Sequence record: MW349128.1
Length of the DNA stretch: 64,000 nt
Reading direction: 5' to 3' (one strand)
The notes beneath the pieces were generated by a model. That model was not told where the DNA came from, made no database searches, and worked only from the letters and a program-made list of their open reading frames with translations. The position numbers and the translations under genes are program-made. This document shows positions 41,388-58,449 of this stretch, piece after piece; position 1 is the stretch's first letter; each line of letters opens with the position of its first letter.

Positions 41388-41434
41388 AAGCGTAATATAT
41401 TGAAATATAAACATATATTATAATAATGAAGAAA

Positions 41435-41504
41435 GTTTATCTAGCTCAGTTGGTAGAGCAATGATTTTCATCATGTGTCCGGGGTTCGATCCCTCGGATA
41501 AGCT
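41435..41504 (+). tRNA. tRNA-like gene with a shrunken anticodon loop (pseudo-tRNA)
   Basis: Acceptor GTTTATC/GATAAGC, D arm GCTC/GAGC, T arm CGGGG-TTCGATC-CCTCG; anticodon arm is only 14 nt (ATGAT-TTTC-ATCAT). Confidence 0.8.
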
Positions 41505-41857
41505 TTTTTTGGTCTAAAATTCTTATTTATTAAAAAATTTTATTTAAAAATATTAATTAACTATATAGTATAAATCTATAATGATCCTCGTCAAATTATT
41601 ATAGATTTTTTTTTTAGTTTTTGATTTAACTAAAAAATATAATAGATTAAATTCTATTATAACTTACTTTGTCGTTTGTTGTTGCTTTAAAAATGTTCCT
41701 TTGATTTCTTGTTTCTATTTTTAATATGTCATGGTTTTAAATAGAAATCCATACGCCTCCTTACGTATAATTAAAAATGAATAGATATTATTATATATTT
41801 ATTTACTTAAAAGAGTGCATAGATGATAAATGTACTCTTTTATTTTTTTTTTATTAA

Positions 41858-41929
41858 TGCTCTATAATTCAATGGTAGAATGCTTGACTGTTAATCAAGA
41901 GGTTGTTTGTTCGAATCAAACTAGAGCAG
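41858..41929 (+). tRNA. trnN: tRNA-Asn(GUU)
   Basis: Full cloverleaf: TGCTCTA/TAGAGCA; CTTGA-CTGTTAA-TCAAG; GTTTG-TTCGAAT-CAAAC; CCA not encoded. Confidence 0.93.
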
Positions 41930-41936
41930 TTTCTAT

Positions 41937-42039
41937 GTTCCTATAGCTCAATGGTCAGAGCGTACGGATTTCATGAATTATACCTGGATAGGATAATTTA
42001 TGGATCTGTAGGTTATGAGTTCGAATCTCATTAGGAACA
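41937..42039 (+). tRNA. tRNA-like gene whose anticodon arm is an extended hairpin of about 21 bp
   Basis: Acceptor GTTCCTA/TAGGAAC, D arm GCTC/GAGC, T arm ATGAG-TTCGAAT-CTCAT; 38 nt lie between the TACGG/CTGTA stem halves. Confidence 0.8.
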
Positions 42040-53872: not shown

Positions 53873-54862
53873 TTATAAAAATCTTAATCTATATTTATTT
53901 TGTGATCCGTCTTCACTTCTTGATCCCATCGCAATATAAGGATTACCTGTATTAATAGGATACATTTCATCGTATTTAAGTTTAACACCCATTGTTACTG
54001 CATTTATATTAGCTCTTATAGGAGAAGCACCTGAAGCATTTGTAACTGAACTTCCCATTGTTGATACTGTATTAAAATCAACTAAAGTATCTGGATTCAT
54101 ATCTTCTTTATACGAATAAGCAAAGTTAACTGATACATGTGGAACGTCTACATCTTCACCAACATTTTGAGAAAAAATATCATATGGTACATTAATAGGG
54201 AAACATCCTGTGTATTTAGAATAATGTAAAACAGTTTCTCCATCAAAATCTAGTAAGAAATAATAAATAGAACTAGTATAATCTATATATCTTTTACTTT
54301 TCGCATCGTCTGAAGGATACATGTAACCTCTAGTAACACCTTCAATATATTCGCTCCAAGCTTTTATTAAATGTATAATATCTATATTTTTATTTTCTTC
54401 AAAGTCAACAGCAATTTCCCCACCAGCAATTGAATTAACTGTTCCTACCGGTAAGTGTTGTTTATATCCGTAGAATGTTTCATGGAATTCTTTCATTGTA
54501 GTTTGTGTATCAGGTATAGATATACCCATAAATCTATTTGAAAGGATTGGAATAAAAGGTTTACCTGAACTTATAGCATTTAAATTACTAAAATTTAAAG
54601 TTTCTAATAATTTTGGTTTAACACTTTTAAGATATGAAAAGAAACTATCTCTATTTATATTACCATCTACTAAATTTAAACGAGGAGCAGTAAAGAAAAT
54701 ATAAGGTAATCCTTTATTAAATATTTCTGAATTTTTATCCTTCATTCTATAAGGGTTAAAGGATTCTATTTCTTTTACATTACCTTCTTTTTTAAGTTCT
54801 TCCTTAAAAGAAGTTTCTAAGCTTTTATCATCTTCAGCCAATCTTTCTTCACCACCATTCAT
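53873..54862 (-). CDS. Tail-tube-fold baseplate or tube-initiator protein (gp48/gp54/gp19-like)
   Basis: F.ENK..DII.L..AW.EYI..DYTSSIYYFLLDFDG..KYTGCFP.NVP pattern; first gene of the late baseplate operon. Confidence 0.55.
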   Translation of the reverse strand: MNGGEERLAEDDKSLETSFKEELKKEGNVKEIESFNPYRMKDKNSEIFNKGLPYIFFTAPRLNLVDGNINRDSFFSYLKSVKPKLLETLNFSNLNAISSGKPFIPILSNRFMGISIPDTQTTMKEFHETFYGYKQHLPVGTVNSIAGGEIAVDFEENKNIDIIHLIKAWSEYIEGVTRGYMYPSDDAKSKRYIDYTSSIYYFLLDFDGETVLHYSKYTGCFPINVPYDIFSQNVGEDVDVPHVSVNFAYSYKEDMNPDTLVDFNTVSTMGSSVTNASGASPIRANINAVTMGVKLKYDEMYPINTGNPYIAMGSRSEDGSQNKYRLRFL

Positions 54863-55233
54863 TTTCTTAAAATTTTAATAAGTACATGTTAAAGCACATT
54901 TATTATTTTAATTTAATTTTTAAATTTATATTATAATAATGGAAGAGAGAATGTCATCTTTCTTCGCTCTTATAACTAGTCTATAAATATGCCTGACTCT
55001 TTAATTCACCCTTATAATTAAAGAGCAGAAGGTCTGGGACCTCCCAGTTATCGAATAGGAAATAAATGCTAATTGTAGACAAAATGAGTTAAATAAAAAA
55101 GATTATTAATTAAAATCAAAAAGTCGTACTGTTATATTTGGGTGTATTGATCTTATTATAAGATTAATATAGTCTACACATATTTATAAGATAGCGTAAG
55201 AGATATGCTGCTCGTATAGGGGAATAAAAATAA

Positions 55234-55377
55234 ATGACATTAGAAGAAATAATAAAGAAGGAAGAAAATTATAAAAAAGAAAATATATATCAAGATAATG
55301 GCAAAAGAAATAAAGAAAAGTGTATGAATTTAAATGATTTCATTTTAAATGAAGTGTTGTATACACCAAAAATATAG
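55234..55377 (+). CDS. Possible 47-aa ORF inside the ncRNA candidate
   Basis: AGGGGA about 10 nt upstream; MTLEEIIKKEENYKKENIYQDNG...TPKI*. Confidence 0.35.
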   Translation: MTLEEIIKKEENYKKENIYQDNGKRNKEKCMNLNDFILNEVLYTPKI

Positions 55378-55550
55378 AAACTCAGTAATTAATAAAAATA
55401 GAAATAAATTTAATGAACGGAACTGTATCGGAAAACAGGAAAGTAGTCATATACGTATTTTATCGCTTCTAGTATATGGCAGGCGAAAGCCTAAAGCGAT
55501 AACCTTCTTAAATATAACAGTACTTAAAAAACAACTCATTTCATATTATG

Positions 55551-55600
55551 ATAATCATTGTCGATCTCTTTAATTAGAGATCGATGATGGTTATTTTTTT
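55551..55600 (+). terminator. Strong intrinsic terminator
   Basis: ATAATCATTGTCGATCTCT/AGAGATCGATGATGGTTAT followed by a T-run. Confidence 0.85.
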
Positions 55601-55671
55601 TTTACTTTTTTTACTAAAAATCATCATCAAACATAATTTTATAAAAATCTTAATAAAAATAAGGAAAGGCA

Positions 55672-57219
55672 GTGAAAGTTTTGGTTAAAAAATTAAATAT
55701 ACTTTCAGATGTTATTGATTTACTTAAGGATTCCACTACAGGTAATGTAAAAAATAACTATAAAAATAACAGTAGACGTAAAAGACCATTCGATAGAACA
55801 CTAAGAGGAAAAGCTGGAGATTTTATTTTACAATTTCCATTAGTGACTTCTGATGCTTTAGATAATGATACTGTAGAATTAATGAGAAATCAATTAGAAT
55901 TAGAAAGAGCATATGAATTTGAATATATTTTAACAAATACTCCAATTCAAGAATATAATCCAAAAGATCCAAATTCATTTATGGGAGACTTACATCAAAA
56001 TATTAATTTTAATGAAAGTACTAAGCAAGATATTAAACGTGTTAATGATTATTTAACTGAGTCACCAGACGAAAAATTTAATAAAACTTCAATTAATGAT
56101 ATGTCAATTACTAAAGAAGAAATGGATTTATTAAATGAAGAAACAATTGATTTTGAGGATTCAAGAAAGATTAAAGGTTATATTGAATTTGACGTTAAAG
56201 AATTCTTAAAGGCTAATAATCCTGATACTAAGGATACTTATACTGCAACAGTATATATAATTAAACCGAATTCTAACGGTGAACAACTGGAATTTTTATT
56301 TAATAATTTGAAAGAGGTTAAATATAGAGGTGGAGAAGATAATTCAAGATCGTTATATGATATCTTGAAAACATCAAGTAATGAAGGAACTTTATCTGAT
56401 AATGGTATGAAATTCTTATATGGTTCTATGGAAATTGCTGAAGCATTTAGTTCATATATTAAAAATATTATAGGAGTAAAACCTGATATACAAACGAATC
56501 AATATGATAATTATGGAACTACTACTACAATTCAAAAAGATAAATTAAATTCATCTATACCAACTATGGTTAATACGAATGTTACTTTCTTAATTACAGA
56601 TTCTAAAGGTGAACCAGTTTCAGGAATTAATCATCCTAGTAAACCAGTTAAATTTGGTGTAAAAACTGTAGTACATCCTGTTAAAACAGAAGATGTAGTA
56701 TTCTATTTATCTGATAAATCTAGAAAATCTAATCTTGTAACTAAATTAGTTAAATTTACTACAGGTGAATTAAGATTATTTAGAGATTTATTATTAGATA
56801 CAGAAAGAACTAAGAAAATTGCTAGAGATTCTAAAAAAGGACGTACAGGTGCTATTTGGAATAAATTAAATTCTATTTATACTGTAGATAGAGCTGGTAG
56901 TATTACTAGATCTAAATCCGGAAATTATATTCCTACAACAGCTTTAATGATTAGCATTGATGAAACTCAAGAAGTTAAACGTAAAACTGGCGTTGATTTA
57001 TTAAATGATAGACGTGCTGTAGATAAAGTTTATAAAGAATTCTTCTTATTAGAATTTATTGTAATTGATGAAGCTAGAGAATTGGTTTACAAATATCTTC
57101 CAGAACATCGCAAATTTGAAATTATAAAACAAAATAAATTAGGTGCTTTGAAAGTAAGCAGTGATAGTAAAAAAGGTGACATTGATTCTAAAGATTTAGC
57201 TAAATTATTAAAACGATAA
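55672..57219 (+). CDS. Late, probably virion structural protein
   Basis: 515 aa, AACA-N6-TA upstream, internal LNEE/FNES motifs. Confidence 0.7.
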   Translation: MKVLVKKLNILSDVIDLLKDSTTGNVKNNYKNNSRRKRPFDRTLRGKAGDFILQFPLVTSDALDNDTVELMRNQLELERAYEFEYILTNTPIQEYNPKDPNSFMGDLHQNINFNESTKQDIKRVNDYLTESPDEKFNKTSINDMSITKEEMDLLNEETIDFEDSRKIKGYIEFDVKEFLKANNPDTKDTYTATVYIIKPNSNGEQLEFLFNNLKEVKYRGGEDNSRSLYDILKTSSNEGTLSDNGMKFLYGSMEIAEAFSSYIKNIIGVKPDIQTNQYDNYGTTTTIQKDKLNSSIPTMVNTNVTFLITDSKGEPVSGINHPSKPVKFGVKTVVHPVKTEDVVFYLSDKSRKSNLVTKLVKFTTGELRLFRDLLLDTERTKKIARDSKKGRTGAIWNKLNSIYTVDRAGSITRSKSGNYIPTTALMISIDETQEVKRKTGVDLLNDRRAVDKVYKEFFLLEFIVIDEARELVYKYLPEHRKFEIIKQNKLGALKVSSDSKKGDIDSKDLAKLLKR

Positions 57220-57360
57220 TTTAGAAACTTTTAGTTATAATGTATATATAAAATCTTAAGATGAAGAAAATTAAGGTTTATTTAATTTAAACATTTATTT
57301 ATAAAATATAAAATTAGAAAAATTATATTAGCGTGTAGTGATTCTATATTTTTATTTTAT

Positions 57361-58449
57361 TTGTATATTAACTCTAGAAAGGAAGTGGAATTCTCTGTGG
57401 AACTTGAACGTAAACATCTTTTAAATGAAGATGCAATGTCTCAAAAAGTTTTACAGGAATTCTCTTTACCCTTCAGACCTTTTAAACGTTTATCACCTGA
57501 AGAGCAAGTGGAAGCTCTTGGTTTAAGCGTAGCTAAAATGTCTGATAAACTGTTGAAAAAATCTGGAAATAAAAACTTAAAATCAATTCTTTCTAGTAAG
57601 GGTGATTTTAAGAAAATCAAAGCGTATAAAGATTTTGAGAAAACTTTTAATTACATAAAAGCTCAAAAATCTAAAGGCTTTGACAAAACACTTATTTTCG
57701 CTTTTGACACTATTGAGAATTCTGTAAAATTGCTTGAAAAAGAAAAACAAAATTTTAAAAAATGTTTTACAAATGATAATGAAGTAGGTCAATTGACTTA
57801 TACAACTATAGCTGCTTCTGTTATGTCAGCTACAGTACAACTTTTCTTCTTAGGATTTGAAAAAGATCTTAATGGAAATTTAAAATTCACTGATAAAAAA
57901 TTAAGTAAAAAAGATTCAATAGAGCTTAAAACTTTAGATAATCTTTTAAAAACATATAAAGCTGGAAAACTAAAAGAAATTTTTAAAATTGATGGCTCAT
58001 TTGTTTCTACAAATGAAGAATTTGATTTTAAAAAACTTGCAGACGATGCTAGTGAAGCATATAAAGATGGTGCTTTAGGAACTATCATGAATAAATTAAA
58101 ATCATTAAATAAAGGAACTAAAGTGGCTGCAGGTGGAATACTTGTTATTGCCTTAGCTCCAATGGTATTATTAATGATTAAACAAGCTTATATTTATTTT
58201 ATTAAAAAACGTTCAGATTTTGCTGAATATTTACGTGATGCTGTTAGTATTATTGAAGGTGAAAAAGATAATGATATTAGTGATTCAGCACGTAAGAAAC
58301 AGGAAAAAATGGCTGAAAGATTAAATAAATTAGCTGATAAAATAGATATTGAAGATGGTGTAGCTGAAGTTCAGTCTAGATCAGAATCAGAATCTATTGA
58401 CGTTGAAATTGGAAAAGAATTAGAAAATGATTTTAATATTAGATTCTAA
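57361..58449 (+). CDS. Late, probably virion protein (start codon uncertain)
   Basis: 362 aa, AACA-N6-TA upstream, LLNED/TNEE motifs, hydrophobic segment near the C-terminus. Confidence 0.7.
   Translation: MYINSRKEVEFSVELERKHLLNEDAMSQKVLQEFSLPFRPFKRLSPEEQVEALGLSVAKMSDKLLKKSGNKNLKSILSSKGDFKKIKAYKDFEKTFNYIKAQKSKGFDKTLIFAFDTIENSVKLLEKEKQNFKKCFTNDNEVGQLTYTTIAASVMSATVQLFFLGFEKDLNGNLKFTDKKLSKKDSIELKTLDNLLKTYKAGKLKEIFKIDGSFVSTNEEFDFKKLADDASEAYKDGALGTIMNKLKSLNKGTKVAAGGILVIALAPMVLLMIKQAYIYFIKKRSDFAEYLRDAVSIIEGEKDNDISDSARKKQEKMAERLNKLADKIDIEDGVAEVQSRSESESIDVEIGKELENDFNIRF

Follow-up and report, generated by a model that had tools for sequence, protein, structure and literature searches.

A structured early transcription unit around the small gene gp184 in Staphylococcus jumbo phage Machias

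What is encoded in the gap between two divergent late operons of the Staphylococcus jumbo phage Machias? We analyzed a window, by which we mean the whole 64,000-nucleotide stretch taken from record MW349128 (window coordinate + 124000 = record coordinate), in which 809 bp separate gp183, a gene for a virion structural protein on the minus strand (53873-54862), from gp185 on the plus strand (55672-57219), both of them late genes. In this gap, GenBank annotates a 47-amino-acid hypothetical gene, gp184, with a ribosome-binding site, plus a terminator. The initial annotation of this DNA had proposed an ornate large non-coding RNA of about 650 nt with its own promoter and terminator, and it had missed the annotated, conserved open reading frame (ORF) and ribosome-binding site at 55219-55377. 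The explanation that we favor, to which we give a probability of roughly 55%, is that the gap holds an early monocistronic gp184 unit, the mRNA of which is elaborately folded, with a structure that controls its stability and translation.

BLAST found the whole unit in phages PB50 (99.6%) and AH12 (83%), and synteny and alignment extended this set by seven further Staphylococcus jumbo phages, Madawaska, MarsHill, SA1, S6, PALS_2, DC4, and LY01. We refer to Machias, PB50, and AH12 as the Machias clade and to the other seven as the S6 clade, which is without two inserts of the Machias clade, at 55028-73 and 55405-505. The flanking genes of Machias and AH12 are 97 to 98% identical, so the informative comparison is that between the two clades, where third codon positions of gp183 are 66% identical; given the same high background, we rejected conserved blocks shared by Machias and AH12 as evidence of selection. 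In searches for further relatives, a DNA pattern scan of IMG/VR for Staphylococcus-type homologues returned only chance matches in coding DNA, a three-block pattern scan of metagenomes gave no match, and protein-guided scans that used gp185 and the gp183 alignment found only distant loci like that of phage AR9 and no close relatives.

Upstream of gp184, we found the motif AAATTTATATTAT, which agrees with the AR9 early consensus AAATATATATTAT-(6N)-G at 12 of 13 positions, with one mismatch and with a correctly spaced G at 54941. That consensus, in which the G is the start site, comes from differential RNA sequencing (dRNA-seq) and primer extension and describes the promoters of the injected virion RNA polymerase (PMC5312081). 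The early promoter motif is found in 10/10 Staphylococcus phages, with the S6-clade copies matching AAATATATATTAT at 13/13 positions, and matches to early promoters are rare in an exact-motif search of the window (four in total, one of which drives a tRNA cluster). At the other end of the unit is a strong intrinsic terminator with a 20-pair stem (55550-95) and a T-run, and this stem has been rewritten with compensation both in AH12 and in the S6 clade. The Machias transcript is thus predicted to start at G54941, to end at about 55603, and to be 663 nt long.

The corresponding region of AR9 has been mapped. A syntenic early start (181724) was located by dRNA-seq between g213 and g214, the homologues of gp183 and gp185; g214 has its own late start, 53 nt upstream of it and after the terminator; and another late start is 26 to 29 nt upstream of g213 (PMC5312081). 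Expression of g214 is late only, with values of 0.69, 20.7, and 1427 at 5, 20, and 40 min, and the paper lists the early start merely as a 340-nt leader of g214 (PMC5312081). Since this layout of early start, terminator, and separate late starts matches that of Machias, where gp183 (-) and gp185 (+) flank the unit, the initial annotation holds in that an RNA with a promoter and a terminator of its own lies between divergent late operons. We regard an independent early unit of this kind as strongly supported.

To describe the RNA, we compared its predicted folds and its alignment across the ten phages. The gp184 leader is 293 nt long and the trailer 226 nt, compared to 19 to 58 nt for other early leaders in the window. 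The plus strand has a minimum free energy (MFE) of -145.7 kcal/mol, with a z score of -6.1 against shuffles, and the minus strand has one of -118.7 kcal/mol. Four helices, which we call Pa, H, LR1, and LR2 (Table 1), are conserved, and in these helices 97.7% of cells are paired in the ten phages, compared to 28 to 54% when the partner is slid by 1 to 3 columns. Pa changes solely from U-A to U-G. In H, two pairs are changed on both sides, from UGUAGAC/GUCUACA to UGUGAAC/GUUCACA, with G-U intermediates in DC4 and LY01. LR1, the arms of which lie about 450 nt apart, has two compensatory pairs, A-U in Machias and PB50 versus G-C in the S6 clade. In LR2, the 14 aligned pairs are 95% paired, with one compensatory pair and six pairs with G-U/A-U changes. 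Overall, five pairs are changed on both sides (two in each of H and LR1 and one in LR2) and nine on one side only, and since the one-sided changes all go via G-U, the helix signal belongs to the plus strand as RNA.

Several analyses identified the same helices. RNAalifold, applied to the ten units, predicted LR1 (55082-90/55533-41) and the core of LR2 (55129-42/55507-20). In an unbiased scan for helices paired in all ten sequences, H, LR2, and Pa ranked at the top, with a misalignment of the AH12 trailer as the only reason why LR1 was missed. A helix of at least 7 pairs with a compensatory change appeared in none of 200 column shuffles. Between the clades, the arm blocks are 53 to 100% identical (five of six at 67 to 100%), and the rest of the unit is 14 to 50% identical. 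The initial annotation had drawn three of these helices, 55074-80/55172-78, 55082-90/55533-41, and 55126-42/55507-23, and all of them are kept in 10/10 phages with compensatory and G-U changes; the covariation found by collecting homologues thus includes compensatory changes in H, LR1, and LR2.

It had also stated that the long-range helices cross the 55074/55178 helix, which is borne out: both LR1 and LR2 are interleaved with Pa and with H. In the MFE fold of Machias, LR1 and LR2 form, and in that of Madawaska, Pa and H do. Because of this crossing, and because both sets of helices are competitive and under selection, the RNA would either form a large pseudoknot or switch between two folds. 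We consider four conserved helices with a crossing topology to be strongly supported. The local hairpins 54942-50/54957-65, 54997-55024, 55034-47, and 55145-69 that had been proposed are all in the Machias MFE fold. A proposed helix 54966-75/55184-95 is not conserved, and the invariant Pa (54982-91/55179-88) uses the same 3' bases. We also saw, by eye only, a helix at 55027-33/55501-07 and an extension of Pa, neither of which we claim.

The next question is whether gp184 is a coding gene. The ORF is open in 10/10 phages at lengths of 43 to 52 amino acids, and the probability that it would be open after shuffling is 0.001 to 0.004 for each of six diverged versions. Its indels (3 and 12 nt) are in frame, 5/6 of the differences between S6 and LY01 fall at codon position 3, and its codon-usage score of +0.30 to +0.48 compares to 0.65 +/- 0.18 for real genes and -1.27 for off-frames. 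The gp184 proteins are charged, hydrophilic, and strongly diverged, with a common C-terminal motif, [DN]F..[ND]..[IL]L..Y. No family was found for gp184 in Pfam or PHROGs, and a search of 5.8 billion proteins revealed no homologue beyond its own cluster. As judged from these sequence comparisons, it is strongly supported that the RNA is an mRNA with a coding small ORF and not a pure non-coding RNA, and the term non-coding in the initial annotation has to be dropped. A fast-evolving small protein of this kind is a typical candidate for a host-takeover or anti-defence factor.

Table 1. Positions of features in and around the gp184 unit (window coordinates)
Feature	Position	Strand	Description	Basis
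Late-promoter-type motif for gp183	54879-54890	-	AACA-N6-TA; outside the RNA	Motif scan
Early promoter	54922-54941 (motif 54922-34)	+	AAATTTATATTAT + 6 nt + G	Motif search; AR9 start rule
P1	54942-54965	+	5'-terminal hairpin from +2; 9 bp, loop AUGUCA	MFE fold
Pa, 5' arm	54982-54991	+	UAUAAAUAUG; pairs with 55179-88	10/10 pairs in 10/10 phages
P2	54994-55027	+	Hairpin with C-rich loop CACCCUUAU; S6 clade AUCCCCUAUA	Compensated stem; MFE fold
Machias-clade-only insert	55028-55073	+	Contains hairpin CUGGGACCUCCCAG (55034-47)	Absent in seven S6-clade phages; MFE fold
H, 5' arm	55074-55080	+	UGUAGAC; pairs with 55172-78	7/7 pairs in 10/10 phages
LR1, 5' arm	55082-55090	+	AAAUGAGUU; pairs with 55533-41	RNAalifold; MFE fold
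LR2, 5' arm	55126-55142	+	GUACUGUUAUAUUUGGG; pairs with 55507-23	RNAalifold; top match of unbiased scan
Variable hairpin	55145-55169	+	Machias and PB50; shorter with GAAA loop in AH12; absent in S6 clade	MFE fold
H (55172-78) and Pa (55179-88), 3' arms	55172-55188	+	Contiguous	Pair counts
Ribosome-binding site	55219-55223	+	GGGGA	GenBank annotation; kept in 10/10 phages
gp184 (QQO92561.1)	55234-55377	+	47-amino-acid ORF; small hydrophilic fast-evolving protein	Coding tests
Machias-clade 3' insert	55405-55505	+	Candidate H-type pseudoknot, 55446-54/55472-80 + 55460-68/55494-502	Complementarity
Hairpin in 3' insert	55482-55491	+	GGC-GAAA-GCC; inside the Machias-clade 3' insert	
LR2, 3' arm	55507-55523	+		RNAalifold; pair counts
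LR1, 3' arm	55533-55541	+	AACUCAUUU	RNAalifold; pair counts
Intrinsic terminator	55550-55603	+	20-pair stem 55550-95, loop, T10 run	GenBank annotation
Late-promoter-type motif for gp185	55630-55641	+	AACAUAAUUUUA; outside the unit	Motif scan

The size of the unit (about 660 nt), its strong fold, and its crossing helices would also fit a pure, large ornate non-coding RNA, such as a ROOL- or GOLLD-like cage, a ribozyme, or a template for a reverse transcriptase (RT), with a spurious ORF. We consider this very improbable, as the ORF is conserved and coding and as the known families gave nothing of this kind. Rfam covariance models, which cover ROOL, GOLLD, RNAIII, riboswitches, group I and II introns, RNase P, and tmRNA, had no match at gathering score in the region or in 11 related loci, and at E values up to 10 they gave only chance-level matches on the terminator; ARAGORN found no tmRNA or tRNA-like signal in the unit. 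These negative results agree with the initial annotation, which had recognized no RNase P, tmRNA, SRP, or intron signature, and they leave its suggestion of a ROOL/GOLLD-like scaffold or ribozyme without evidence. The RT gene is at another locus, and a 2026 preprint has assigned to the RT of these phages a repeat-array RNA encoded immediately upstream of that gene. Because the RT is linked to its own upstream array RNA, nothing points to the RNA described here as an RT template.

The initial annotation had also described an H-type pseudoknot around a GNRA hairpin, in what we now recognize as the Machias-clade 3' insert. The stems of this candidate pseudoknot are complementary (-9.0 and -9.5 kcal/mol), in an insert that only three near-identical phages carry, and the nested fold of the insert is unremarkable (z = -1.2). 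Two of its three substitutions hit the hairpin: in PB50, A55488 to C changes GAAA to GAAC, a mutation of the GNRA loop that counts against the pure non-coding reading, and in AH12, T55492 to C breaks the closing A-U pair. The third, U-A to U-G, is compatible with the pseudoknot pairing among these three near-identical sequences. Pairing between the two Machias-specific inserts was insignificant (p = 0.14). A 74-amino-acid ORF over the 3' insert (55349-55573), in the frame of which both AH12 substitutions are synonymous, was rejected as coding, being without a ribosome-binding site and having a codon score of -0.13. The insert also contains a late-promoter-type motif, AACAGGAAAGTA, on the plus strand (55434-55445). 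If active, it would give an approximately 160-nt late RNA with the 3' arms of LR2 and LR1, and it is likely a chance match, with late motifs occurring at 0.78 per kb per strand.

In the explanation that we favor, the injected virion RNA polymerase would start at G54941 and stop at the terminator, by analogy to AR9. The leader would consist of the terminal hairpin P1 followed by a domain that is closed by Pa and H and has P2 inside, and two segments within this domain would pair with the trailer just before the terminator as LR1 and LR2. This leader-trailer pairing would loop out the ribosome-binding site, the ORF, and, in Machias, the extra 100-nt 3' domain. Such a closure could protect the message from host 5' and 3' RNases and could set the timing and amount of the small protein, with the C-rich loop of P2 as a likely gate on the ribosome-binding site.

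The long, conserved leader-trailer duplex could also be a substrate for RNase III, in which case a cut in the duplex of the 17-bp LR2 and the 9-bp LR1 would free a stem-capped gp184 mRNA and a separate 5' domain. RNase III is known to act on long-range stems around rRNA and on the 5'-3' duplex of icaR, and early mRNAs of the Bacillus phage SP82 are processed by this enzyme. The LR1/LR2 duplex is A-U rich with G-U pairs, and the equivalent helix of AR9 relatives has just about 12 bp, so that we view an RNase III module as unlikely as the explanation of the unit, and as a compatible sub-mechanism of a folded, closed gp184 mRNA.

In place of P1, the S6-clade RNAs have another hairpin, which is 10 bp long and has a GAAA loop. 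Both AH12 and the S6 clade have a P2 stem of altered sequence in which compensatory changes maintain the pairing, while the C-run of the P2 loop has been retained in an RNA that is 26% G+C. The best partner of the P2 loop in the rest of the RNA is the GGGG of the ribosome-binding site in 6/7 sequences, with 7 to 8 bp in the Machias clade.

We also found the same design in more distant phages. At the same locus, AR9, BpSp, and three metagenomic relatives have an early unit of about 250 nt (L011:2545-2800 in AR9, L035:359-604 in BpSp, and L027, L028, and L030). All five of these AR9-family units have a 5' domain closed by an outer helix, a leader that pairs with a segment just after a small ORF (p <= 0.003 in each, with differing sequences), and a hairpin with a C-rich loop that pairs near the 3' end. 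This loop is the best partner of the 16 nt before the U-run, and the loop/tail pairs covary (AACCACCU/AGGUGGUU, AACCGCCUU/AAGGCGGUU, AAUCACCCA/UGGGUGAUU, and AACCACAU/AUGUGGUU). The ORF has a strong ribosome-binding site and encodes a hydrophobic peptide of 14 to 16 amino acids. In these units, the G-rich partner of the C-rich loop follows the terminator hairpin and immediately precedes the U-run, and a long-range pseudoknot at the end of the terminator stem may matter for termination or 3'-end protection.

Two other loci resemble these in part. The metagenomic locus L026 has a 279-nt leader, the 5' end of which pairs with the ribosome-binding site and AUG, followed by a 44-amino-acid ORF. The same slot in the Listeria phage LPJP1 is occupied by a structured unit of 470 nt (z = -6.2), the ORF of which is just 25 amino acids long. 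Leader-trailer pairing was insignificant in LPJP1 and L026 by a crude duplex test. The LPJP1 ORF is unannotated (L010:2595-2672, TTG start, MNKKKKYDLEKTVIILLSIINKILY); its start resembles those of the S6-clade ORFs (TTG AAT AAA), and its end resembles the AR9-family peptides and the Machias C terminus (..IL.Y). From these sequence resemblances, it may link the peptide families.

The AR9 unit upstream of g214 is like that of Machias in its slot, its early motif, and its own terminator, which is followed by a late promoter for the downstream virion gene, and both have a closed 5' domain, a leader-trailer helix round a small ORF, and a hairpin with a C-rich loop. Unlike the Machias unit, that of AR9 is about 260 nt long and encodes the short hydrophobic peptide, and the partner of its C-rich loop is the tail immediately preceding the U-run, whereas the Machias loop would pair with the ribosome-binding site. 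BLAST found no nucleotide similarity between the Machias and AR9 units. The common design, that is, an early promoter, a closed 5' domain, pairing of this domain with the 3' region round a small ORF, and a terminator, predates the Staphylococcus family, although the units show no demonstrable nucleotide homology.

Several observations count against a gp184 mRNA whose structure acts in cis. The early start and the termination in Machias are extrapolated from AR9, and the covariation mainly reflects one deep split, between the Machias and S6 clades, with few independent events. With respect to control of translation, LR1 and LR2 leave the ribosome-binding site uncovered, the P2 loop can form just 5 bp with this site in the S6 clade, and there is hardly any other G-run with which the loop could pair. 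Accessibility of the ribosome-binding site, modeled with nested partition functions, showed opposite trends in the two clades. Finally, the Staphylococcus and AR9 families share the RNA design but differ in what the ORF contains, so that a role of the RNA itself fits as well as control in cis.

This last point leads to a tentative alternative in which the RNA has a dual function or acts in trans, with the folded RNA as the main product and the ORF as a secondary one. Its C-rich loop could bind the ribosome-binding sites of host or phage mRNAs, as S. aureus RNAIII and the Rsa RNAs do, or the RNA could act as a decoy or scaffold, with a host RNA-binding protein, an RNase, or a defence sensor as its partner. 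Such a role would account for the RNA design, and not the peptide sequence, being shared by the Staphylococcus, Bacillus, and metagenomic relatives, for the retention of the P2 C-run while its stem was rewritten, and for the clade-specific inserts, which resemble expansion domains; early promoters in Machias also drive non-coding genes, the tRNAs at 41409. However, no target or partner was identified, the C-rich loop of the AR9 family has a clear intramolecular partner, and the ORF is under coding constraint. In a broader form, which we find doubtful, the AR9-like Bacillus and Staphylococcus jumbo phages, and possibly the Listeria phage LPJP1, would share a class of early "closed-loop" RNA, in which a folded 5' domain is tied to the 3' end by covarying long-range pseudoknot helices round a mini-ORF and in which the RNA itself acts in host takeover, the peptide being secondary or coupled. 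If this were true, the RNA could, for example, bind ribosome-binding sites via its C-rich loop or trap a host RNase or defence factor.

A comparison with known systems places the folded gp184 mRNA among structured mRNAs. In the icaR mRNA of S. aureus, a C-rich anti-Shine-Dalgarno motif lies in the 3' untranslated region (UTR), and the duplex between the UTRs, which is an RNase III substrate, extends over the ribosome-binding site. Ruiz de los Mozos et al. reportedly found in 2013 that this 3' UTR pairs with the 5' UTR of the same mRNA. The Machias unit is similar to icaR in its host genus, in its pairing of 5' and 3' UTRs (here LR1 and LR2), and in having a C-rich motif complementary to the ribosome-binding site, but its duplexes are upstream of that site and its C-rich motif is in a 5'-UTR hairpin loop. 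With hok-type mRNAs it shares a small ORF in a highly structured, probably stable mRNA, pairing of 5' and 3' regions, and possible alternative folds. In contrast to the hok toxin, a hydrophobic membrane peptide, gp184 is hydrophilic and charged, and it belongs to a lytic phage and to no plasmid or chromosomal addiction module. For an antisense RNA, the motif searches, which covered early- and late-type promoters, returned none on the minus strand within the unit.

The Machias RNA also resembles S. aureus RNAIII in size (500 to 660 nt), in the long-range helix between its 5' and 3' regions, in its numerous hairpins and C-rich loop, and in the small ORF that it contains; it differs in being phage encoded and early, without a sequence or Rfam match and without known trans targets. 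ROOL and GOLLD are similar to it in size class, phage association, and complex folds, but the unit has no match to their covariance models, and ROOL and GOLLD are without a translated ORF. This RNA is unmentioned in the MarsHill/Machias genome paper, the AR9 transcriptome paper, the DC4 paper, and the SA1 papers. The structured RNA is real and undescribed, and we would group it with structured mRNAs or with dual-function RNAs whose 5' and 3' regions pair rather than treat it as a categorically new class.

An early transcript with a defined fold between divergent operons might finally be a primer or R-loop RNA that seeds DNA replication at an origin, as in the cases of ColE1 RNA II and the T4 ori transcripts. 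Of the explanations that we weighed, this is the least probable: the GC skew of the window merely follows gene orientation, with nothing special at the unit, and a strong terminator and a translated ORF would be unexpected for a primer RNA.

The surroundings of the unit vary among the phages. Machias and AH12 are 97 to 98% identical in gp182-gp183, followed by a fine mosaic at about 55000-58400 with patches that are 46 to 80% identical; in the RNA unit, the diverged patches coincide with the terminator, the body of the ORF, and the stems of hairpins, in which compensatory changes maintain the pairing. This divergence is far above the neutral divergence of neighbors, and either micro-recombination or diversifying selection would be sufficient to explain it. 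The S6 clade has about 1 to 1.6 kb extra between gp183 and the RNA unit (L003:3349-4448 in Madawaska and the same region in the other six), where a second early promoter copy and a terminator accompany one to three small K/E-rich genes. The starts of Madawaska gp189 and gp188 are the same (MLNKIKEI...), and the promoter version of Machias, AAATTTATATTAT, matches the upstream copy in this extra stretch.

We also noted other promoter-type motifs in the window. A near-consensus sigma-70-type promoter, ATGACA-16-TATAAT (11/12), on the minus strand at 54930-54957 overlaps the early promoter and faces gp183; in the A+T-rich DNA of the window, sigma-70-type matches are not above those in shuffles (15 found, 18 expected). 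Directly before the tRNA cluster at 41409-42039 is an early-type promoter, AAACATATATTAT, with one mismatch. Rfam called three tRNAs in this cluster (41435-504, 41858-929, and 41937-42039, the last being 103 nt long with an insertion), ARAGORN called only two, one with an undetermined anticodon, and the genome paper describes two pseudo-tRNAs.

The jumbo phages of the AR9/PBS1 group infect with an injected RNA polymerase, and control at the RNA level is almost unknown among them. The unit described here had been read as a hypothetical 47-amino-acid gene or, in AR9, as the 340-nt leader of a late gene. With its leader-trailer pairing supported by covariation and its crossing topology, it provides a concrete and testable example of mRNA closure in a phage of Gram-positive bacteria. 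It is also a candidate regulatory or stabilizing RNA module for phage engineering, and, as a new RNA family, it could enter databases.

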